DNA of 63,698 nucleotides, counting the filler, from Octopus bimaculoides (Eukaryota), in the NCBI RefSeq assembly GCF_001194135.2. It is 9 parts of 8 records of this genome, joined end to end, with 100 filler letters (N's around TTAATTAATTAA, not from the genome) between each part and the next. Parts side by side here need not be neighbours in the genome. Positions count along the whole stretch, not along the records: positions 3,406 to 30,150 come from NC_068985.1; 8 more parts are not named here. One strand, 5' to 3'. The position numbers were made by a program, and so were the translations under genes. The notes beneath the pieces were generated by a model. That model saw only the letters and a list, made by a program, of their open reading frames with translations. It was not told the DNA's origin and did no database searches. Positions 3,406-27,730 of the stretch are shown here, piece by piece. The number at the start of each line of letters is the position of its first letter. Within the stretch, counting starts at the first letter, position 1.

Positions 3406-3662
3406 TGAACACTCAATATTTCATCTACATTCAATACTTTCTTTCATGGTGCCATCCATTTTTATTTTATTTTATTTTATATTGTATATTGTATATCATA
3501 TTATATATTGTATATTCCATATTCTATACCCCACATTAGTTCTGCAGGAATATAAATAAAACATAAAAAACAGACAGTGTTGGAACTCTTTTAAGCAAAA
3601 TAATATATTCCTCTATACACAATCATACAAAAAACCCCACCTTTTTTGTATTTATTTTTACT

Positions 3663-3698: not shown

Positions 3699-5240
3699 TT
3701 GTCCCTGAGAGCTCCTCTATGCTGATGACCTTGCTCTTATAGCTGAATCACAACCTCAGCCAGAGAAGTTCCAGGTATGGAAACAAGGTCTAGAATCAAA
3801 AGGTCTCAGAGTTAACCCAGCAGAAATTAAAGTCATAGCAAGTAAGAAGGCAGACAAATCATAAATCCCCTCAGGTAGATGGCCCTGCTTGATCTGTAGA
3901 AAAGCTGTAGTTAGAAACTCCATAAGATGCACCCAGTGTAAGCTTTGGACACACAAAAGGAGCAGCAACATCAAAGGAAGGTTTACAGAGAAACTAATCT
4001 TTGTATGTGGAAGGTGCACAGGCGTAATAAATGCTGAACATGTGCAGAAAATAGATTCCATCAACTGCCAGTGGGACAAGCTAGAAGTAGTAGATAGCTT
4101 GAGTATCTAAGCAACCAGGTTAGTAGTGGAGGTGGTTGTTCCGAGAGCATAGCTGTGAGAATAAGATTAGGCTGGGCAAAGTTCAGAGAGTTCCTACCCC
4201 TGCTGGCAACAAAGGGCCTCTCTCTCAGAGTGAAAAGCAGATTATTTGATGCCTGTGTGTGAACAGCTATGCTGCATGGCAGTGAAACATGGGCTATGAC
4301 AACTGAGGACATGCATAAGCTTGAGAGAAATGAAGCCAGTATGCTTTGCTGGATGTGCAATGTCAGTGTGCATGTTTGACAGAGTGTAAGCATCTTGGGA
4401 GAAAAGTTAGGCATAAAAGAAATTAGATGTAGTGTGGAAGAGAGATGACTGAACTGATATGGTCTTGTGATGTGTATGGACAAGGACAGTTGTGTAAAGA
4501 AATGCCAATCTCTAACTGTGGAAAGGACCTGTGGTAGGGGTAGACCCAGGAAGTCATGACCTTTGAACTTCGAACCTGACAGAGGCCATGACTAGTGACT
4601 GAGACCTTTGGCGATATGCTCATCAACCTTTGGATGTTGGGCCTAATGGAGGCAAAGTGACTGAATTCCTTTCGAGCATTGGGCCTCATGGAAGCAAAGT
4701 GGCTGAGTTCCTTTTGAGTGTTGGGCTTCACAGAGGTGAGGTGGCTGAGTGCCTTTCGAGCAGGCCTCACAGAGGCAAGGTGGCTGAGTTCCTTTTGAGT
4801 GTTGGGCCTCATGGAGGCAAAGTGGCCAAGCTCCTGTGCCCATGGAAGCAAAGTAGATGAGTTCCTTTCAAGTGTTGGGCCTAACAGAGGTGAGGTGGCT
4901 GAGTACCTTTTGAACAGGCTTCACGGAGGCGAAGTGGCTGAGTTCCTTTCGAGGGTTGGGCCTCATGGAGGCAATGCCCAAGACCTTTGGCATTATGTCC
5001 TGCTTGAGATGAAGACCCATCAAACTGAGCAATATCACAGTCATGGCAGATATCAATATCATGAAAATGGCACATAAAAGCACCCACTACACTCTTGGAA
5101 TGGTTGGCATTAGGAAGGGCATCCAGCCATAGAAAACCATGCCAAATCAGACTGGATCCTGGCACAGCCTTCTAGCATGCCAGCCCAGTCAAACCATCCA
5201 ACCCATACCAGCATGGACAATGGACATATGATGATGTATG
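3697..5240 (+). mobile_element. 5'-truncated RTE-clade LINE (RT C-terminus, Cys/His zinc-finger-like segment, 3' UTR with (GAT)n tail)
   Basis: ELLYADDLALIAES, QVWKQGLESKGLRVN, C..ICRKAV.RNSIRCTQCKLWTHKRS...FVCGRC, RIRLGWAKFRE, GRGRPRKS. The 3' end GGAAGGGCATCCAGC...CCAACCCATACCAGCATGGA...GATGATG is shared with other copies in the window. Confidence 0.85.
4630..4980. repeat. Minisatellite, ~39-42 bp unit, ~9 copies
   Basis: Unit GTTGGGCCTCATGGAGGCAAAGTGGCTGAGTTCCTTTTGAGT recurring at 4636, 4678, 4720, 4801, 4875, 4955. Confidence 0.9.
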
Positions 5241-6317: not shown

Positions 6318-6480
6318 GTGGCTGTGTGGTAAGAAGCTTGCTTCCCAATCTCATGGCTCTGGGTTCAGTCCCACTGCATGGCACCTTGAGCAAGTGACTT
6401 CTTCTATAACCTTGGCTCAAACAAAGCCTTGTGAGTGGATTTGGTAGATGGAAACTAAAAAATGTCTGTCATATATACAT
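6318..6480 (+). mobile_element. tRNA-derived SINE, family A
   Basis: GGCTGTGTGGTAAGAAGCTTGCTTCCC...GGGTTCAGTCCCACTGC...AAAGCCTTGTGAGTGGATTTGGTAGATGGAAACT. A/B-box-like head; many copies in the window. Confidence 0.8.
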
Positions 6481-7179
6481 AAATATATATGTCTGTTTGT
6501 CCTTCACCATGGCTTGACAACTGGTGTTGGTGTGTTTACATCCCTGTGATTCAGCAGTTCAGCAAAAGAGTCTGATGGAATAAATACCAGGTTTTAAAAT
6601 GACTAAAAATTCTTTGAGGTGATGTCCCAGCATGGCCACACACTGAAATGAGTAAAAGATAAAAAATTGTCTTGCAGAAAAGGTTGGGGGACTATGCAAG
6701 AGTGACAATGGGGGTATGAAGGTAAAGTAGAGGAGTATACAACATAGTGACTAAAGTGAAATAGGTGCGGTGTGGCTGTGTGGTAAAAGCTTTGTGTGTG
6801 GATATGGTAGATGGAAACTGAAAGAAGCCCGTCATGTATGTATGTATGTGTCTTATTATTTGTGTTTGTCCTGCTGGGAGGACAGCGTGCGATGGAAGGA
6901 CAGGTTGAAAAAGATGGATGCTTGACTGCAGTTAAAGAGAGATGAAAGGGACAGGTGGAGGAGGAAATAAAAGTAGTAAGAGAGATAAAGGTGAAGAAAT
7001 AAAAGTAAGGATTGGTGGTACACACTGAGGAGAAAGTGAGGGGAAACAGAGATGAAAAAGAGTAGTGAGTAAAGAAGAAGGGAGATTAAAGAGAATGAAG
7101 GGGAATGTGTTAAGGAAACGTTATGAAAGGGGAGGGCTAAACGTATTCCAAATGGTCCAAACCAGTTTGAATTGGTATA

Positions 7180-8160
7180 ATCCAATTCAAACTGGTTTAT
7201 AACAGTCCAAGCCAGCTGATCTCGATCAGCTTGGCCTGGAATAACCTGCTTCTATCTGGTGTAGCAGACCTGGACAGGATCGCACAGAATATACAAGCAC
7301 TAACATTCCTCCTGGATCAGCTTAAACCAGCTTGGACTGGCAAACTGAGATTGGCATAGCTTGCCCCGAACTGGTGTAGCTCAGCTTCATCTAGATCTAA
7401 CAGTATAGACCAGCTTTAGATGTGCCTGGACTGGCTCAGCTAACATCAGCCTTAATAGGCAAATCAAGGTTGGCAGAGCCTACTCATGTAGCTCAATAGG
7501 TCTAGATCTGGCTAGATAGAACAGCAATAAATTCGACTGGTCTGACTCAGCTTCAATTAGCTTGAACTGGGACACAGAGGTGGTCAGAACCTGTTTTGAT
7601 CTCATGTAGCTCAGCCTGGTCTAGATATGCCTGGATAGACACCAGTAGATTTGCTTGGCCTGGGTCAGCTGAAATCAGCTTGGACTGGTAAACCGAGGTT
7701 GGCTGAGCCTCCTTTGATCTTGTGTAGCTCAGCCTTGACTAGATCTGCCCAGATAGACCTGCCATGGCCTGGATCAGATGAAATCACCTTGGATAGGCAA
7801 GCCAAGGTTGGCAGATCCTGATTCAATCTGGTTTAACTCACCTTGGTCTGGATATTCCTGCATAAATCTGTAATAGATTAGCCAGGCTCAGGTGAAATCA
7901 GCTTGGACTGGCAAACTGAGGTTGGCAGAGCCTGCTTCAGTCTGGTGCCTGGTCTGGATCTGCCTAGATGCACCAGCAATAGTCTGGCCTGACTTAGCTC
8001 AGATCAGCTTTGAATGGTAAACCAAGGTTGGCAAAGCCTGCTTCCATCTGGTGTAGTTCGGCCTGGTCTGGTGAAATCACCTTGGACAGGCAAACCAAGG
8101 TTGACAGAGCCTGATTCGATCTGATTTAACTCATCTTGGGCTGGATATGTGTGCATAGAG
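7180..8160. repeat. Degenerate minisatellite, ~110-120 bp unit, ~8 copies
   Basis: CAGCTTGGACTGGCAAACTGAGGTTGGCAGAGCC...GTAGCTCAGCC..GTCTAGAT recurs near 7328, 7447, 7558, 7677, 7785, 7898, 8005, 8078. Confidence 0.85.
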
Positions 8161-9344: not shown

Positions 9345-9470
9345 GGTGTAGCTGTGTGCTAAGCAGTTTGCTTCCTAACCTTGTGCAAGTGTTTTCTACC
9401 ACAGCATCAGGCTGACCAAAGCCTTGTGAGTGGATTTGGTAGATGTAAACCTGAAAGAAGCCTATCATCT
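9345..9470 (+). mobile_element. SINE family A copy (internally deleted) at the left edge of the satellite block
   Basis: GTAGCTGTGTGCTAAGCAGTTTGCTTCC...GACCAAAGCCTTGTGAGTGGATTTGGTAGATGTAAACCTGAAAGAAGCC. Confidence 0.75.
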
Positions 9471-9714
9471 CTCTCTCCCTTTCTATAGGGTTAGGGTTAG
9501 GGTTGCTCAAAATTTTCATCAAATATTTTGCTTAAAATTTTCATCAAAAATTTTGCTCAAAACTTTTCAGCAAAATTTTCACAAAATTTTTCATCAAAAA
9601 TTTTGCTCAAAATTTTCCATCAAAAATTTTGCTCAAAATTTTCATCAAAATTTTCATCAAAAATTTTACTCAAAAATTCTCAGCAAAATTTTGATGAGGT
9701 TTCCCCATATGTGA

Positions 9715-10780
9715 TGCTTATGAGGTGCCACCCTCGTAAGTGTGCCATAGGGCTGCCCATATGTGCCGTCCTGGATGTGCCACCCTGCTAAGTGTGCCAT
9801 AGAGCTCCCCATTTGTGCCGCCCAGGATGTGCCACCCANNNNNNNNNNNNNNNNNNNNNNNNNNNNNNNNNNNNNNNNNNNNNNNNNNNNNNNNNNNNNN
9901 NNNNNNNNNNNNNNNNNNNNNNNNNNNNNNNNNNNNNNCCATATGTGCCGCCCAGGATGTGCCACCCTCGTAAGTGTGCCATAGGTCTGCCCATGTGCCG
10001 CTTATGATGTGCCACCCTTGTAATTGTGCCATAGGGCAACCCATATGTGCCGCCCTGGATGTGTCTCCCTCGTAAGTGTGCCATAGGCCTCCCCATATGT
10101 GCCGCCATGGATTTGCCACCCTCGTAAGTGTGTCATAGGGCTCCCCATATGTGCCGCCAACGATGTGCCACCCTCGTAAGTGTGCCACTAGGGTTAGGGT
10201 TGTGTAGCCAACGATGTGCCACCAACGATGTGTCACCCCAGTAAGTGTACCATAGCGCACCCCGCATGTGCCGCCAAGGGTCAAGGGTCAGTAGCTAGCT
10301 ACTGGTAAAGATTAGGGCGACAAGGGTGTGCCATACGGCACCCTAAATGTGCCACACTCGTGTGTCATAGGGCTCCCCATATTTGCCGCCAACGATGTGC
10401 CACCCTCGTAAGTGTGCTATTAGGGTTAGGTTTAGGGTAAGGGTTGTGCCGCCAACGATGTGCCGCTAACGATGTGTCACCCTCGTAAGTGTACCATAGG
10501 GCTCCGCATATGTGCCGCCAAAGTGTCAGTAGCTAGCTACTGGTAAAGATCAGGGGGAAAGGGTGTGCCATAGGGCACCCTATATGTGCCACCCTCGTAA
10601 GTGTGCCATAGGGCTCCCCATATCTGACGGCAAGTATTGCTACCCTAGTAAGTGTGCCTTAGGGCTCCCCATATGTGCCGCCAAAGATGTGCCACCCTCG
10701 TAAGTGTACCATAGGGCTCCCCATATGTGCCGCCAAGGCTCAAGTGTCAGTAGCTAGCTACTGGTAAAGATCAGGGGGGC
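9715..10780. repeat. 52-bp GC-rich minisatellite block 1
   Basis: Unit GTGTGCCATAGGGCTCCCCATATGTGCCGCCCAGGATGTGCCACCCTCGTAA with period 52 (9738 to 9790). Further blocks at ~11846-12505, ~13573-14213 and ~14971-15100. Confidence 0.9.
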
Positions 10781-10937
10781 TAGGTAGGGTTAGTGTTAGG
10801 GTCAGGGTTAATGTTATGGTTAGGGTTAGGGCTAGGGTTAGGGTTAGGGTTAATGTTAGGGCTAGGGTTAGAGCTAGGGTTAGGGCTAGGATTAGGGTTA
10901 GGGTTAGAGCTAGGGTTAGGGTTAATGTTAGGGTTAG
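10781..10937 (+). repeat. Variant telomeric repeat array (TTAGGG)n
   Basis: GGGTTA mixed with GGGCTA, TGTTA and GGATTA variants. Further arrays at 12506-13017 (gapped) and 14214-14540. Confidence 0.9.
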
Positions 10938-11167
10938 TCTCTGACCTTTGACGCTTTTCCCATTACCGTTTTTGATGAAAATTTTAATATAGATATTTGA
11001 TGATAATTTTTCGATGAAAATTTTTGATTTTAGAGGGTGGCATTACAAAGGGTGGCATTTCCTTGGTGGCACATCTAGAGAGCCCTATGGCACAGCTAGA
11101 GGGTGGAACTTCCGAGGGTGGCACATCCTGGGTGGCACATCCTGGGTAGCACCTATGTGGAGCCCTC

Positions 11168-11845
11168 GTAACGGAAACTAACGGAAAGTAACGGTAACTA
11201 ACTGAAGGTAACGGAAACTAACGGAAACTAATGAAAAGTAACGAAAACTAACGGAAAGTAACGGAAGCTAACGGAAAGTAGCAGAAACGAACGGAAACTA
11301 ACGGAAGGTAATGGCAAGTAACGGTAACTAACGGAAGGTAACGGAACGTTATGGAAACTAATGAAAAGTAACGAAAACTAACGGAAAATATCGGAAAATA
11401 ACGGAAACTAACGGAAAGTAACGGAAACTAACGGAAGGTAATGGCAAGTAACGGTAACTAACGGAAGGTAACGGAACGTTATGGAAACTAATGAAAAGTA
11501 ACGAAAACTAACGGGAAATATCGGAAAATAACGGAAACTAACGGAAAGTAGCGGAAACGAACGGAAGGTAATGGCAAGTGACGGTAACTAACGGAACGTT
11601 ATGGAAACTAACGGAAAATATCGGAAAATGACGGAAACTAACGGAAAGTAGCGGAAACTAACTGAAAGTAGCGGAAACTAACGGAAACTAATGAAAAGTA
11701 ACGAAAACTAACGGAAAGTAACGGAAACTAACGGAAAGTAGCGGAAACTAATGAAAAGTAACGGAAACTAACGGATAGTAGCGGAAACGAACGGAAACTA
11801 ACGGAAAGTAACGGAAACTACCGGAAGGTAACGGAACCTAACAGA
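11168..11845. repeat. 10-bp tandem array TAACGGAAA(C/G)
   Basis: Dozens of TAACGGAAAC/TAACGGAAAG/TAACGGAAGG units. Further arrays at ~13212-13572 and ~14751-14970. Confidence 0.95.
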
Positions 11846-14800
11846 AAGTTAGTGTGCCATAGGTCTCCCCAAATGTGCCACCCGTAACTGTGCCATACGG
11901 CTCCCTATATGTGCCGTCTTGGATGTGCCACCCTCCTAAATGTGCCACCCTCTTTACTGTGCCATAGGGCTCCACATATGTGCCGCCCAGGATGTGCCAC
12001 CCTCGTAAGTGTGCCATAGGTCTCCCCATATGTGCCAACCTTGTAATTGTGCCATAGGGCAACCCATATGTGCCGCCCGGGATGTGTCTCCCTCGTAAGT
12101 GAGCCATAGGTCTCCCCATATGTACCGCCCTGGATGTGTCTCCCTCGTAAGTGAGCCATAGGTCTCCCCATATGTGCCGCTTATGAGGTGCCACCCTCGT
12201 AAGTGTGTCATAGAGCCCCCCATATTTGCCGCCCAGAATGTGCCAACCTCATAAGTGTGCCATTGGGCTCCCATATGTGCCAACCTTGTATGTGTGCAAT
12301 AGCGCTCCCCATATGTTCCGCCAAGGATGTGCCGCCAACGAGGTGCCACTTTCGGGAGTGTGCCATAGGTCTTCCTCTATGTGCCGCCAAGGATGTGCCA
12401 TAGGGCTCCCCATATGTGCCGCCCAACATGTGCCACCCTCCTAAGTATGTCATAGGTGGCAATTCTGTGTGTGGCACTTCCTGGGTGCACACCTGGGGAG
12501 CCCTATGGTTAGGGTTAGGGATTGGATTAGTGCTAGGGTTAGGGTTAGGGACAGGGCTAGGGTTAGTGTTAGGTTTAGAGTTAGGGTTAATGTTAGGGTT
12601 AGGGCTAAATTTAGCTTTAGGGTTAGGGTTAATGTTAGGGTTAGGGCTACGATTAGGGTTAGGGCTAGGGTTAAGGTTCGGGCTAGGTAGGGTTAGTGTT
12701 AGGGTTAATGTTATGGTTAGGGTTAGGGCTAGGGCTANNNNNNNNNNNNNNNNNNNNNNNNNNNNNNNNNNNNNNNNNNNNNNNNNNNNNNNNNNNNNNN
12801 NNNNNNNNNNNNNNNNNNNNNNNNNNNNNNNNNNNNNNNNNNNNNNNNNNNNNNNNNNNNNNNNNNNNNNNNNNNNNNNNNNNNNNNNNNNNNNNNNNNN
12901 NNNNNNNNGGATTAGGGTTAGGGCTAATGTTAGGGCTAGGGTTAGGGCTAGGTTTAGGGCTAGGATTAGGGTTAGGGCTAGGGTTAGAGCAAGGGTTAGG
13001 GTTAATGTTAGGGTTAGTCTCTGACCTTTGACCCTTTTCCCGTGACCGTTTTTGATGAAAATTTTAATGAAGATTTTTGATAGTTTTTCATTAAAATTTT
13101 TGATCAAAATTTTGATGAAAATTTTTGATGTTAGAGGGTGGCATTTCCTTGGTGGCACATCTAGAGAGCCCTATGGCACAGCTAGAGGGTGGCACATATG
13201 TGGAGCCCTCGTGACGGAAACTAACGGAAGGTAACGGAAAGTAACGGTAACTAACGGAAGGTAACGGAAGCTAACGGAACGTAACGGAAACTAATGAAAA
13301 GTAACGGAAACTAACGGAAAGTAACGGAAACTAACGGAAAGTAACGGAAAATATCGGAAAATAACGGAAAGTAGCGGAAACGAACGGAAACTAACGGAAG
13401 CTAACGGAATCTAATGAAAAGTAACGGGAACCAACGGAAAATATCGGAAAATAACGGAAAGTAGCGGAAACGAACGGAAACTAACGGAAAGTAACGGACA
13501 CTAACGGAAACAAATGGAAGGTAACGGAAAATAACGGAAACCAACGGAAACTACCGGAACCTATCGGAAACTTAGTGTGCCATAGGACTCGCCAAATGTA
13601 CCACCCAGGATGTGCCACCCGTAACTGTGCCATACGGCTCCCTATATGTGCCGTCTAGGATGTGCCACCCTCCTAAATGTGCCATAGGGCTCCCCATATG
13701 TGCCGCTTATGAGGTGCCAACCTCGTAAGTGTGCCATAGGAATCCCTATATGTGCCACTCTCGTAAGTGTGCCATAGGGCTCCCAATATGTGCCGTCCCG
13801 GATGTGCCACCCTGCTAAGTGTGCCATAGGGCTCCCCATTTGTGACGACCAGGATGTGCCACCCACGTAAGTGTGCCATAGGGCTCCCCATATGTGCCGC
13901 CCTCGTAAGTGTGCCATAGGGCTCCCCTTATGTGTCGCCAAGGATGTGCCACCCTCCCAAGTGTGCCATTGGGCTCACATATGTGCCGCCCAGGATGTGC
14001 CACCCTTGTATGTGTGCCATAGGGCTCCCCATATGTTCCGCCAAGGATGTGCCGTAAACGATGTGCCACCCTCGTGAGTGTGCCACAGGTCTCCCTGTAT
14101 GTGCCGCCAAGGATGTGCCATAGGGCTCCCTATATGTGCCACCCTCCTAAGTATGTCATAAGGTGGCAATTCTGTGTGTGGCACTTCCTGGGTGGCACAC
14201 CTGGGGAGCCCTATGGTTAGGGTTACGGTTAGGGTTAGGGCTAGGGTTAGGGATTGGATTAGTGCTAGGGTTGGGGTTAGGGCTAGGGTTAGGGTTAGTG
14301 TTAGGTTTAGAGTTAGGGTTAATGTTAGGGTTAGGATTAGGGTTAGGGCTACGATTACGGTTAGGGCTAGGGTTAGGGCTAGGTAGGGTTAGTGTTAAGG
14401 TTAGTGTTATAGTTAGGGTTAGGGCTAGGGTTAGGGCTAGGTAGGGTTAGTGTTAGGGTTACTGTTATGGTTAGGGTTAGAGCTAGGGTTAGGGCTAGGA
14501 TTAGGGTTAGGGCTAGGGTTAGGGTTAATGCTAGGGTTAGTCTCTGACCTTTGACCCTTTTCCCGTGACCGTTTTTGATGAAAATTTTAATGAAGATTTT
14601 TGATGAAAATCTTTAGTAAAAATTTCGATGAAAATTTTTGTTGAAATTTTTGATGTTAGAGGGTGGCATTACAAAGGGTGGCATTTCCTTGGTGGCACAT
14701 CTAGAGAGCCCTATGGCACAGCTAGAGGGTGGCACATATGTGGAGCCCTCGTAACGGAAACTAACGGAAAATATCGGAAACTAACGGAAAGTAGCGGAAA

Positions 14801-16178
14801 CGAACGGAAACTAACGGAAGGTAACGGAAAGTAATGGAAACTATCGGAAAAGTAGCAGAAACGAACGGAATGTAACGGACACTAACGGAAAGTAACGGAA
14901 ACTAATGGAAGGTAACGGAAAGTAACGGAAACCAACGGAAACTACCGGAAGGTAACGGAACCTAACGGAAAGTGCCACCCGTAACTGTGCCATAGGGCTC
15001 CTTAGATGTGCCACCCTCGGAACTGTGCCATAGGGCTCCCCAGATGTCCCACCCAGGAAGTGCCACCCTCTGAAGTTCTACCCTCGTAAGTGTGCCATAG
15101 NNNNNNNNNNNNNNNNNNNNNNNNNNNNNNNNNNNNNNNNNNNNNNNNNNNNNNNNNNNNNNNNNNNNNNNNNNNNNNNNNNNNNNNNNNNNNNNNNNNN
15201 NNNNNNNNNNNNNNNNNNNNNNNNNNNNNNNNNNNNNNNNNNNNNNNNNNNNNNNNNNNNNNNNNNNNNNNNNNNNNNNNNNNNNNNNNNNNNNNNNNNN
15301 NNNNNNNNNNNNNNNNNNNNNNNNNNNNNNNNNNNNNNNNNNNNNNNNNNNNNNNNNNNNNNNNNNNNNNNNNNNNNNNNNNNNNNNNNNNNNNNNNNNN
15401 NNNNNNNNNNNNNNNNNNNNNNNNNNNNNNNNNNNNNNNNNNNNNNNNNNNNNNNNNNNNNNNNNNNNNNNNNNNNNNNNNNNNNNNNNNNNNNNNNNNN
15501 NNNNNNNNNNNNNNNNNNNNNNNNNNNNNNNNNNNNNNNNNNNNNNNNNNNNNNNNNNNNNNNNNNNNNNNNNNNNNNNNNNNNNNNNNNNNNNNNNNNN
15601 NNNNNNNNNNNNNNNNNNNNNNNNNNNNNNNNNNNNNNNNNNNNNNNNNNNNNNNGAAATTTTTGAAATTACTTCTATCAGTAAATTATGAACTTACTTT
15701 TATCTGTAATTCCGTCAGAAAAATAAAAAAAAAACGTTGCAAAAGTAAATAAGAAATTTGTAGGCAAATTTAACGAAGTGTACGGATTGAAGTGAAATTT
15801 ATGAAGTTACTTCTGTCAGTAAATTATGTATGAAATTATTTTCATCAGTAATTGTGAACTTCTTTCTGTCAGTAATTTGTTGTTGTTGTTCTTTGTAAAT
15901 AGCGATTGAAAACTTACAGTGAAAACAATAGAGAGAGTGGGTGAGATATAGATAGAGGGGAGAGAGTGAGCTAGCTAGTTAGACAAATTAGATATAGAGA
16001 GATCGATAAGATAGATAGATAAATAGATAGATAGATAGATGCAGTCTGTTGCTGTCTTTTTAAACCGGTTGCTTTCTTTCCCTAGCAAGTTGTCTCGTTT
16101 GGAGGCATAATCTATGTACATATTAAAGAGAACAACAAAAGTTATAACAGTTGGCAGGGTCGGTAGTTTTCACATTTC

Positions 16179-16514: not shown

Positions 16515-16660
16515 CGACGGGAGGTTTGTACCCATCTCTACGTTCTGAGTTCAAATTCCGCCGAAGTCAACTTTGCCTTTCATCCTTTCGAGGTCTAAAA
16601 ATAAGTACCAGTTGGACACAGGGGTCGATATAATCGACTATTCTCCACCTACCCGAAGCC
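16515..16660 (+). mobile_element. SINE family B
   Basis: CGTTCTGAGTTCAAATTCCGCCGAAGTCAACTTTGCCTTTCATCCTTTCGAGGTC...AAGTACCAGTT...GGGGTCGAT. Confidence 0.8.
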
Positions 16661-17894
16661 ACCCTTGGGGGGAAAAATTTAAAATAATAATAATAATAAT
16701 AATGACGCCTGCCGATCAAACTCCCAACCCACAACTAAGTCTTAAGTGTATATATATATATATGGGCAACACACACACTAAATTAAAAAATGTTAGTAAG
16801 TAAAAGTGTTTTAAAAAGATTGTTAAGTTTTCAGATTAACACCAGTACTATTTTCACTACAGTGATAGGGTTAGGACGAAAAAGTGGAAAATGTGGATTT
16901 CTATAAACTTTTAAAAAGGCTTCACACAGATACAGAACTTCAGCATTATATATTAAGATGGGCAACACACACACACTAAATAAAAAAGAATGATAGGTAT
17001 TTGTATGTATGTGTGTATTAATGTGCATTCTCTGTGTGTGTATATATATATGGCTGTAATAATAATGACCTCTGCCGATGAAAGTCCCAACCCACAACTA
17101 AGTTTTAAGTGTATATATATATGGGCAACACACACACACACTAAATAAAAAATGTTAGTAAGTAACAGTGTTTTAAAAAAGATTGTTAAATTTTCAGATT
17201 AATACCTGCACGATTTTCACTACAGTGTTAGAATTGGGGCTTTAGGGTTAGGTAGGTAATCGTGCGGGTGTTAATCTCAAGATTTATGAAAAGATTTTCC
17301 AAAAAACTCAGTTTGTAGAGAATAAATGTTTGTCGATTGTATTTGAAAAAGATGTGACTATTTTTTTTCTGTCGTTATCATGGTGAAGGATGAGTTAGAA
17401 ATAACTTACAATTCCCGCTAATTAGAATGAGGTATGTATGTATATATGTAGTATTAAAATGAAACCATTAAAGTGAATCTGTCATTACAGTATCGAAATG
17501 TGATTGTTTCAGTTTTGATACTGAAATAGTTTTCTTTTACTGTCAGTGTTTCTCCTTCCTTTCTTTTTGTATTTGTTGTTGCATTGTTCGTAAAGGTTCA
17601 TAAGAGAAAGTAGGAGTTGAAAGGATTTGTATTAGAAAGAGGAAATTAGATTTTATTAGGGAGAAAATATTTACTCAAGTAGTTTTAAGGATTTTATTCG
17701 TTATTAGGAATTTCTTTGAGTGAAAAAATGACGCAGTGACCTAACAAATTGTATTTAGAATATTAATTGCGATTCTTTAATCCAAGAAATTTGGAATTGT
17801 GTAAATGTATGAATTTCAAACATACACACACACACACAGAGAAAATCTGCCTTTTATAGTATAGATACACACACATACATACATACATACACAT

Positions 17895-18911: not shown

Positions 18912-19446
18912 CTTATAAAAATATAATTATAGTTCAGGGCTACTGAAAATGACCATCGCCAATGCTATCCTGGAGAGGCTCTAACGTGGGAGTTCTGGCA
19001 TTGTGGAGAGCATGGAGACATCCCTTAATCACCATTACTAGCAGGTCCTGACTTGGAATGGTAGTACTTGTTAGGGTTCCTTCTATGAGTTAAATAGATT
19101 TCTCAAGGGTGGAGGAGGCTCCCGTTATTTTTGACAAAGCAATGAGGAAGGCAGCTCTTTTAGAAGGAAGATACTCTAACATAAAACTTACAGTCAAAAA
19201 TAATACCAGTCACCTTGCAATGCTGGTCATTGGAAACTACAATGGTGACAGAGTGAGTGATGAAAGTATAGTACAAGTTTTTGCCACTTAAATCCAATAA
19301 CATACAGATTGGACAAAGCCTTGTGAGTGGATTTAGTTGACAAAAACTTAGAGGTCTATCATGTGCATGTGTGTGTGTATGTGTGGTGTGTGTGTGTGTG
19401 TGTGTGTGTGTGCGCATGCGTGCGCACGTGTGTATATATATATATA

Positions 19447-20689
19447 TCAGATCATTAAGAATGAAATGTCCGATTTTCTTATGCACCAAGTTTGCCAGTT
19501 TTTAACTATAATATTTTATCCTGACAATTCTTTGTTTCACAACACTGAAGAGTTACATTATCACTTTTCGAAATACAATTCACGGTGTCTGTTTATATTG
19601 TGAGTTTTCTCTTGCAAATCAATTTTTGTGAACCCATGGAGAGAGAAAAAATTTGTGTTGTTCATGAATATGAGTGCCATCATGGAACCAATGCATCTCA
19701 GACAGCTTGAAATATCATTGAGGTGTTTGGTGAAGATGTGGCAAATGAGTGCACTGTACGTCGATGGTTTGAGAAGTTCTGGTCTGGTGACTTTACTCGT
19801 GAAAATCAGCCCTGTGGTAGACCCGAGACCAAGGTGGGTAATGATGAGCTGGAAACTGTAGTGAAAGTAGATACATCTCAAACTACACAAGTTAGCAGCA
19901 AAGTTTGATGTTTTGATTCCAACTGTATTGGACCATCTGAAACAAATCGGCAAGGTAAAGAAGGTACCACACAAACTGAACGAACATCAAATGACTTGTC
20001 ATTTTGAAACTTGCTGTTCTTTGCCGTCACAGCATAAAAGTGAACCATTTTTGCATCATATTGTTACATGTGATGAAAAATGGATTCTTTTCAACAATAG
20101 CAAGCATTCTGCAAAGTGGTTTAATAGAGATGAGGTGCCAAAATACAATCCAAAAAAGAATATTCATCAAAAAAAGCTAATGGTGTCTGTTTGGTGGTCC
20201 AGCACTGGTGTCATCCACTACAGCTTCATGAGACCTGGTAAGTCAATTACAGCAGATGTATAAATCAACCAATTGGATGAAATGATGAGTGAACTTGCAA
20301 TTAAACAACTGAGACTGGTCAATGGAGACAGGTCAATTCTCTTGCAAGACAATGCTTGCCCACATGTTGCACAAAGAATGTTACTCAAGTTACAGGAACT
20401 GAACTTAGAAGTACCCTGTCATCCACCATATTCATCAGATCTTGCACCAATGGACTATCATATTTTCCAGGCATTAGACAACTTTTGCAAGGAAAAAACT
20501 TCAAATCTGAAGAAGATGCAAAAACAGCCTTTCGTGATTTCATCACCTCTTGCTCTCTAGAATTCTTTACTGCCAGCATAAATAAGCTACCGATAAAATG
20601 GTAAAATTGTGTTGATAATTTAGGTGCATACTTTGATTAACTGCACTGCTTTTTGTTGAAAATTGGATATTTCATTCTTAATGACCTGA
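19447..20689 (+). mobile_element. Near full-length mariner (DD34D-type) transposon, frameshifted transposase
   Basis: TIRs TCAGATCATTAAGAATGAAATGTCCGATTTTC / GAAAATTGGATATTTCATTCTTAATGACCTGA with TA on both sides. Transposase motifs TVRRWFEKF, KVPHKL, TCDEKW, LLQDNACPH, HPPYSSDLAPMDY. Confidence 0.92.
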
Positions 20690-27574: not shown

Positions 27575-27730
27575 GGCTGTGTGGTTAAGAAGTTTGCTGC
27601 TCAACCATGGAATTTTTGGTTAAGACTCACTATGTAGCATGTTGGACAAGTGTCTGCTACTATATCTCCACACTGACCAAAGCCTTGTGAGTATATCTGA
27701 TAGATGGAAACTGAAAGAAACTTGACACTA
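27575..27730 (+). mobile_element. SINE family A
   Basis: GGCTGTGTGGTTAAGAAGTTTGCT...GACCAAAGCCTTGTGAGT...GATGGAAACTGAAAGAA. Confidence 0.75.

Follow-up and report, generated by a model that had tools for sequence, protein, structure and literature searches.

Macrosatellites and complex minisatellite clusters are composed of kilobase-sized units with smaller repeats inside them. Telomere-like hexamers in a degenerate state are known from the het-ITS and subtelomeric blocks of interstitial telomeric sequence (ITS), where they lie away from a sequence end, beside tandem repeats and mobile elements, and are amplified within a larger unit (PMC6410037). Molluscs have modular repeats of another type in the oyster HINEs, with 5' and 3' subterminal inverted repeats of 11-12 bp, a left module that has a microsatellite and a complementary repeat close by, a central satellite-like array and a 3' palindrome, and whose insertion at TT produces no duplication; tandem arrangements of whole Helitron-type elements are known as well (PMC7492417). 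TTAGGG is the sole experimentally determined telomere motif of cephalopods (PMC13218726; PMC6160780) and has been reported as the telomere motif of an octopod (PMC13218726). Here, we describe a composite tandem repeat of Octopus bimaculoides (assembly GCF_001194135.2) in which a TTAGGG-like array is one of the parts of a larger module. It lies at 9486-15100 of a stretch of 63,698 nucleotides (the window), within a piece of 27 kb (positions 3,406 to 30,150) that comes from NC_068985.1.

The octopus repeat resembles the macrosatellites in its kilobase unit arranged head to tail, its internal short arrays, its length changes by whole units and the homogenisation between copies, but the copy number seen is small (3.5), whereas satellite DNA typically comes as long arrays with many copies per genome, mostly in heterochromatin. 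With the het-ITS and subtelomeric ITS blocks (PMC6410037) it shares all of the features mentioned above, but the hexamers take up no more than 150-340 bp of each unit of 1.5 to 2 kb, as one among five arrays that are unrelated to each other, and only 3.5 units are seen. Cg_HINE of the Pacific oyster (PMC7492417) is likewise a modular mollusc repeat with a microsatellite-like segment, a central array, short conserved flanks, a palindrome and tandem occurrence. Unlike it, the octopus module contains four or five different arrays per unit rather than one and has no dispersed copies in the DNA examined, and no sequence that pairs with the linker, as the subterminal inverted repeats defining Cg_HINE might do, was found in the module. 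As it stands, the locus is repetitive DNA of an ordinary sort, and it adds a new example to a class of sequence already known.

A module of unrelated arrays repeated head to tail

The region 9486-15100 consists of tandem repeats throughout, as determined with Tandem Repeats Finder (TRF) and by self-comparison, and these recur in the same order in at least 3.5 head-to-tail copies of a non-coding module of about 1.5 to 2 kb. Three complete copies (M0, M1 and M2) are preceded by a leftmost partial copy and followed by the partial copy M3; M2 is the cleanest and is free of gaps. Five kinds of short repeats build the module, and on the plus strand the parts follow each other as a 52-bp GC-rich minisatellite, a TTAGGG-like array, a linker, AT-rich GATGAAAATTT repeats, an inverted GC patch and a TAACGGAAAS array. 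The periods obtained with TRF are 52 bp for the minisatellite, 6 bp for the TTAGGG-like array, 12-13 or 25 bp for the AT-rich repeats (TTTTGATGAAAA) and 10, 20 or 30 bp for the TAACGGAAAS array. The GC content is 53-59% in the 52-bp arrays versus 24-35% in the flanks. The linker TCTCTGACCTTTGACCCTTTTCCCGTGACCG is found three times, with three mismatches at 10938 and exactly at 13018 and 14541, while shuffled versions of the window contain no match. With three complete linkers, a constant order and orientation of the parts and collinear self-matches, the arrangement is a head-to-tail tandem.

An earlier note on this DNA had described a six-part module in three copies plus a partial one, with periods of about 2.1 and 1.5 kb. 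All of the parts named there are present in that order and orientation (TRF and consensus matches), and the distances between linkers measure 2080 bp (including a gap of an estimated 171 N) and 1523 bp; the first is probably about 1.9 kb after correction for the gap. Missing from that list are patch B, which is an additional inverted GC patch of M1 and M2, the palindromic spacer and the 244-bp repeat of M0, and the inverted orientation of the AT-rich array in the leftmost copy. The module is not a higher-order repeat in the strict sense, being a mosaic of unrelated arrays and not a multimer of diverged monomers from one family whose blocks resemble each other more than the monomers do. True higher-order periods are confined to single arrays of M0, namely the 52-bp array (244 bp) and the 10-mer array (130 bp).

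In a self-BLAST, 11477-12737 and 13210-14433 match each other collinearly over 1291 bp. The 52-bp arrays of M1 (594 bp) and M2 (577 bp) can be aligned unit for unit and have diagnostic variants in common; they are 88.7% identical (487/549, or 626/706 over a longer stretch), with no indels other than those of 14 and 17 bp. These indels, and also the variant periods of 38, 66 and 90 bp, are explained by the make-up of the 52-bp unit, which consists of three TGTGCC-type sub-repeats (14, 18 and 20 bp). The differences between the two arrays comprise 41 transversions and 21 transitions, and this ratio of about 2:1 is expected from a shuffling of non-identical neighbouring units and not from ordinary point mutation. 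In the TTAGGG-like arrays of M0 (153 bp), M1 (about 340 bp) and M2 (326 bp) the variant hexamers also follow a common order, with indels that are mostly multiples of 6 bp and an identity of 95.1% between M1 and M2. The arrays are therefore collinear variant by variant and yet decayed, which indicates that whole modules were duplicated after the arrays had decayed, and that we are not looking at linkers amid independently growing arrays. The variation in length resides mainly in the 10-mer array, which measures 681 bp in M0, 359 bp in M1 and 222 bp in M2 with indels that are mostly multiples of 10 bp, and in addition in the shorter hexamer array of M0. The earlier statement that only the lengths of the arrays change is correct for the 10-mer arrays, but it does not describe the 52-bp and TTAGGG-like arrays of M1 and M2, which are collinear and nearly equal in length.

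Where the arrays of M1 and M2 differ by 5-11%, the unique sequences that join them are identical. Patch B (63 bp), the linker together with the first AT-rich repeat (58 bp) and the inverted GC patch A (82 bp) contain no substitution in 203 bp, and if the junctions diverged like the arrays, at most three mismatches in 205 bp would have a probability of about 6.5e-8. The simple reading of this comparison is that the junctions are identical because the modules were duplicated recently or undergo gene conversion, while the arrays turn over fast. The linkers had attracted attention in the earlier note as almost invariant, with amplification or selection as possible reasons. Their conservation is real (two are exact copies and one has three mismatches) and fits recent duplication or gene conversion, but the linker is in no way special. 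All unique junctions are equally invariant between M1 and M2, so selection on the linker is not needed to explain the pattern, and the M0 linker itself has three changes.

The reverse complement of the linker (13018-13048) reads CGGTCACGGGAAAAGGGTCAAAGGTCAGAGA and contains three RGGTCA-like half-sites, one of which is broken in the M0 copy. The element GGGTCA-A-AGGTCA within it has some resemblance to a nuclear-receptor direct repeat, as has the TAACGG in the 10-mer TAACGGAAAC to a Myb site.

The reading that we consider on balance probable is that of a composite (mosaic) tandem repeat at the level of the locus, without coding capacity and presumably without function, that arose by tandem duplication of whole modules followed by array turnover and homogenisation of the junctions. 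A cluster of adjacent short-unit arrays and two short inverted GC patches, joined by short unique sequences, would have formed and decayed. This cluster of about 1.5 to 2 kb would then have been duplicated head to tail as a whole, at least 3.5 times. The likely mechanism is unequal exchange between sister chromatids or homologues, or replication slippage with template switching, and it may have been favoured by the internal repeats, by a palindrome of 100 nt and by the hexamer arrays, which are prone to form G-quadruplexes. Subsequently, the arrays would have gained and lost whole units and exchanged sequence between neighbouring units, while the unique junctions would have stayed identical or been made so by gene conversion.

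At its left boundary, the repeat begins with a (TAGGGT)3 run on the plus strand (9486-9502), directly after a short interspersed nuclear element (SINE)-like dispersed repeat (9378-9468). The leftmost partial copy consists of an AT-rich array of about 14 units of 12-13 or 25 bp (9503-9692) that is the reverse complement of TTTTGATGAAAA and hence lies on the minus strand, inverted relative to the other modules. M0 starts on the plus strand with the 52-bp minisatellite at 9702-10784, which contains an assembly gap (9839-9938) and the 244-bp higher-order repeat (10128-10776). The latter combines 52-bp units with short TTAGGG runs, starting at 10188 and 10420, and with a spacer that has the perfect 16-bp palindrome CAGTAGCTAGCTACTG and is found in place of patch B. 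The degenerate TTAGGG array (10785-10937), the linker with three mismatches to the other two copies (10938-10970) and the AT-rich TTTTGATGAAAA repeats (10971-11030) come next. They are followed by patch A on the minus strand, extended by additional 14-bp GGGTGGCACATCCT repeats (11031-11168), and by the TAACGGAAAS array of about 68 units with its 130-bp higher-order period (11169-11849, plus strand).

In M1, the 52-bp minisatellite of about 11 units (11850-12443) is followed by patch B (12444-12506), the degenerate TTAGGG array with a gap at 12738-12908 (12507-13017), the exact linker (13018-13050), the AT-rich TTTTGATGAAAA repeats (13051-13129), patch A (13130-13213) and a TAACGGAAAS array of about 36 units (13214-13572). 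The same parts make up M2: a minisatellite of again about 11 units that is collinear with that of M1 (13573-14149), patch B in the form of one reversed GC unit (14150-14214), the TTAGGG array (14215-14540), the exact 33-bp linker (14541-14573), the AT-rich TTTTGATGAAAA repeats (14574-14654), patch A (14655-14751) and a TAACGGAAAS array of about 22 units (14752-14973). In both modules the two patches are on the minus strand and all other parts on the plus strand. M3 contributes the start of a fourth 52-bp array (14972-15100, plus strand), which is cut off by the gap at 15101-15655.

The inverted patches are related to the minisatellite. The 52-bp consensus matches the minus strand of patch A with 86.5% identity over 52 bp at 13147-13197 and 14687-14737, and many inverted pairs connect the GC patches with the 52-bp arrays. 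Patch B, which in M1 and M2 sits between the 52-bp array and the TTAGGG array and is absent from M0, pairs with the last 52-bp units in a long imperfect palindrome. The resulting imperfect hairpin comprises about 100 nt, and for 14118-14216 the predicted DNA fold has an energy of -29.3 kcal/mol (z = -4.3), which no shuffled sequence equals.

Nature and possible source of the telomere-like hexamers

The hexamer arrays are strongly degenerate. Canonical TTAGGG accounts for 11 of the 25 hexamers in M0 and 21 of the 54 in M2 (40-45% overall), and the longest perfect run in any array is two units; frequent variants are CTAGGG, TTAATG, TTAGTG and TTAGAG. The 27-kb piece contains seven G-quadruplex motifs on the plus strand, all of them inside the TTAGGG-like arrays, and most of the canonical ones are in that of M2. 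As the period-6 arrays are separated from the two ends of the piece by at least 6 kb and 15 kb, they can be classed as interstitial telomeric sequences.

Within the 244-bp repeat of M0, runs of two and four hexamers are positioned exactly on the TAGGG of the 52-bp unit, at 10182-10203 and 10414-10444, respectively. The normal unit reads GTGCCA-TAGGGCT-CCCCATAT at this place, and the hexamer runs replace the CTCCCCATAT part. These short runs suggest that the hexamer arrays may have arisen in place and were not imported from a chromosome end. Judging from the sequence, the TAGGG of the 52-bp unit may have served as their seed, through slippage or through the repair of a break by telomerase. The simplest view of the telomere-like part is that of an interstitial hexamer array which is old and decayed, and it does not resemble a recently captured telomere.

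A second telomere-like array is present nearby. The segment 16176-16372 is a complete element resembling a miniature inverted-repeat transposable element (MITE), with inverted terminal repeats of about 31 bp (GGTAATTTTTYAGATTAACACCCGCACRATT) and CACATTT on both flanks, which is possibly a target duplication of 7-8 bp. Between the inverted repeats lies a degenerate CCCTAA array with a period of 20 bp. Partial copies are found at 16811-16873 and 17187-17286, and these have only two or three telomere-like hexamers, so that the array seems to have expanded inside the element. The array of this element is degenerate like those of the module in the same genome and is 74-80% alignable with them, but the element has terminal inverted repeats of 31 bp and none of the 52-bp, 10-mer, AT-rich or linker parts, whereas the module is without such termini.

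Alternative origins of the module

Transposition would provide another way of spreading telomere-like hexamers, with the module as a non-autonomous mobile element with internal arrays (a Helitron, a Helentron-type HINE or a MITE) of which several copies lie in head-to-tail tandem. The composition of the oyster HINEs and the tandem occurrence of Helitron-type elements (PMC7492417) are in agreement with this, as is the presence in the module of AT-rich microsatellite-like repeats beside a conserved piece of 33 bp with TC as its first letters, of a number of arrays, of GC patches in inverted orientation and of a strong palindrome. Possible analogues of the pieces of a HINE are the AT-rich 12-13-mers after the linker, the several arrays and the palindrome at 14118-14216. 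The MITE-like element bounded by inverted repeats and carrying a CCCTAA-like array only 1 kb to the right keeps the idea of a mobile carrier alive for this genome. Helitrons have 5'-TC and 3'-CTRR termini with a hairpin 10-20 bp ahead of the 3' end, and they insert between A and T with no target duplication. Such ends, which the earlier note had suggested as a comparison, were not found on either strand of the sole visible outer boundary, where the edge copy is rearranged. This boundary reads ...CTTTCTA|TAGGGTTAGGG and not 5'-TC, and the other strand ends in ...CCCTA, where neither CTRR nor a neighbouring hairpin is present. The internal junction before the linker (GGGTTAG|TCTC) does not conform to CTRR either. 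MITE termini are likewise absent from the module: the inverted GC patches are internal, each pairing with the body of a 52-bp array, and no duplication is seen at the left boundary. A search for inverted repeats in 14140-14780 returned only palindromes of the AT-rich array and that of patch A, with nothing that pairs with the linker region; from tandem copies alone, the ends of an element cannot be placed. Furthermore, no solo copy or fragment occurs in about 41 kb of octopod DNA, and the modules differ in a junction piece, with patch B in M1 and M2 and the palindromic spacer in M0. We therefore regard a mobile element as unlikely. Rather improbable, too, is a relic of a chromosome end or subtelomere, in which a telomeric tract or a proximal tract of variant repeats, together with telomere-associated minisatellites, was internalised or is still near the end and was then amplified. 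The hexamers do correspond to the only telomere motif determined experimentally for cephalopods (PMC13218726; PMC6160780), and ITS are often flanked by satellites and mobile elements (PMC6410037). The G-strand of every array is on the same strand, and CTAGGG is among the most frequent variant hexamers of these arrays. The latter is said to be a known variant of proximal human telomeres. The position of the locus argues the other way, with at least 15 kb of ordinary interspersed-repeat DNA on its 3' side and 6 kb before it, as does the lack of any run longer than two perfect hexamers. Moreover, the hexamer arrays are collinear copies of one another, which leaves room for at most one capture event, and the short runs that grow from the TAGGG of the 52-bp unit permit an origin in place. 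At this one locus, the subtelomeric and the Helitron or HINE origins put forward in the earlier note find neither support nor refutation.

The tandem arrangement itself might in part be an artefact, with reads from similar repeats, possibly of several loci, threaded into one path. The sequence is a short-read scaffold with seven N gaps of estimated size in the piece, three of them inside or at the edge of the repeat region. At the gap at 9839-9938, inside the 52-bp array of M0, the 30 nt that precede the N and the 30 nt that follow them agree at 28/30 positions, and the contig ends may thus overlap. The gap at 12738-12908 interrupts a TTAGGG-like array whose orientation is the same to its left and right. 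When the flanks of this gap are joined without the N, they align end to end with M2 at 95.1% identity (369/388), with no more than an indel of 10 bp where they meet. This seamless join by homology suggests that the true size of the gap is probably near zero and that the period is about 1.9 kb and not 2.08 kb. Both situations are typical of contigs that break inside repeats, and the junction pieces that are 100% identical over 58-82 bp are longer than typical k-mers. On the other hand, the gap-free segment 12909-15100 spans more than one complete period, which makes the order of the parts independent of scaffolding, and every part of the module is present in the same order in the gap-free segment 9939-12737. 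A short-read contig can still be a mixture of copies, but the many private substitutions and unit-sized indels of the copies, in a consistent collinear pattern, are unlike simple collapse. An artefact of this type thus appears quite improbable to us. More doubtful still, and hardly more than a speculation, is a genome-wide and possibly lineage-wide octopod repeat family in which the TAGGG inside the 52-bp unit gave rise on the spot to a telomere mimic, as opposed to a captured telomere, and selection preserved the junctions as protein-binding platforms, the whole acting as a sink for chromatin or telomere proteins or as a mobile carrier of their sites. The idea of selected platforms derives from the resemblance of the reverse-complemented linker GGGTCAAAGGTCA to a nuclear-receptor repeat and of TAACGG to a Myb site. 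Duplication of whole modules at the locus followed by array turnover remains the reading that we prefer, and several points weigh against it. The evidence comes from a single locus with 3.5 units visible before a 555-N gap, and this gap hides the right boundary. The left edge is rearranged by the inverted AT-rich array, so that a transposable-element terminus could have been lost there. A short-read assembler that collapses or mixes copies could also produce identical junctions beside arrays that have diverged by 5-11%. Finally, the MITE-like element, with its telomere-like array between inverted repeats, demonstrates that mobile carriage does occur in this genome.

Relatives, flanking sequence and significance

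No fragment of the module was found in the remaining 21 kb of the piece or in a randomly chosen 20-kb chromosome locus of Octopus sinensis. The module is therefore not a very abundant dispersed family; by contrast, SINE-like repeats recur several times in the same DNA. Exact-pattern scans with the linker and the core of the 52-bp unit gave no matches in metagenome, prokaryote-genome and viral collections. The open reading frames (ORFs) of the region are translations of repeats and have no Pfam match, and no Rfam family was found in the region. An exact look-up of the ORFs of the window in public assemblies gave none on record. Among 5.8 billion proteins, a peptide spanning the linker gave 8000 low-complexity candidates, none of them significant, and the ORF of the 52-bp array gave no candidate sharing a word. 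Full-text searches of the literature revealed neither a description of an octopus satellite nor any published mention of these motifs.

One match was obtained when the ORF of the 52-bp array was compared with 1.84 billion representative proteins using HMMER (P0065, E = 3e-12 over four repeated stretches). The matching protein is the translation of a homogeneous 52-bp satellite (CAGGAACGCCACATCCAGAAAACCCATTGTGGCATCCCCTACGGGTCAATCA) of at least 12 kb, at L002 8725-20687 of a eukaryote metagenome contig (ENA ERZ26859072, ctg11374, 207 kb). This satellite has 36- and 88-bp variants and is adjoined by 63-bp and 44-bp satellites and by a reverse-transcriptase ORF. Its period is that of the 52-bp unit of the module, which it weakly resembles, but we rejected it as a relative. 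BLASTN found nothing, and the score of consensus against consensus was reached by 27 of 1000 shuffles. In an nhmmer test, the real array scored 29.9 bits and simulated arrays of the consensus 17.7 to 21.6 bits, while 2 of 1500 decoys with shuffled units reached 20-25 bits. With decoys at this level, chance could account for the similarity of a hit that was the best among billions. The organism from which the contig derives has no dispersed repeats in common with the window or with Octopus sinensis.

The flanks of the composite repeat are ordinary interspersed repeats, comprising SINE-like copies, a mariner pseudogene and other minisatellites. Five copies of the SINE-like repeat are present (9378-9468, 6383-6472, 6786-6835, 19314-19362 and 27647-27719), with the core CAAAGCCTTGTGAGTGGATTTGGTAGATGGAAACTGAAAGAAGCC followed by a simple-sequence tail; the composite repeat starts about 18 bp after the core at 9378-9468, where the tail would be. 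On the other side, the first sequence past the 555-N gap (15669-15934) is a dispersed repeat that is 88% identical over 268 bp to Octopus sinensis (L001 4048-4311), and this places the right edge of the composite repeat inside the gap. In addition to this dispersed repeat, the piece and the Octopus sinensis locus have in common a SINE-like repeat (16538-16638, 88%) and a mariner element (79% over 1231 bp). The latter is a mariner-type transposase pseudogene at 19444-20658, recognised by the Pfam family Transposase_1, with an in-frame stop at 20261-20263. Its protein is at most 70% identical to copies from mixed taxa, while its DNA is 79% identical to the copy of Octopus sinensis. The dispersed repeats in common with Octopus sinensis, which are more informative here than the mariner protein, mark the piece as octopod DNA. 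Two further minisatellites are unrelated to the module, one at 4627-4974 with a period of 42, 81 or 154 bp (TTGGGCCTCATGGAGGCAAAGTGGCTGAGTTCCTTTCGAGCA) and one at 7483-7758 with a period of 118 bp.

The repeat content of cephalopod genomes is poorly catalogued, and the locus illustrates clearly how micro- and minisatellites in a mosaic become a kilobase-sized tandem unit. It also shows that a minisatellite in which TAGGG is already present can harbour telomere-like hexamers and perhaps give rise to them. Such loci can be expected to give false 'telomere' signals in quality checks of assemblies, and it is there that short-read scaffolds are least trustworthy. If the module were dispersed with defined ends, it would add an element that carries telomere repeats to the repertoire of mobile elements in molluscs.

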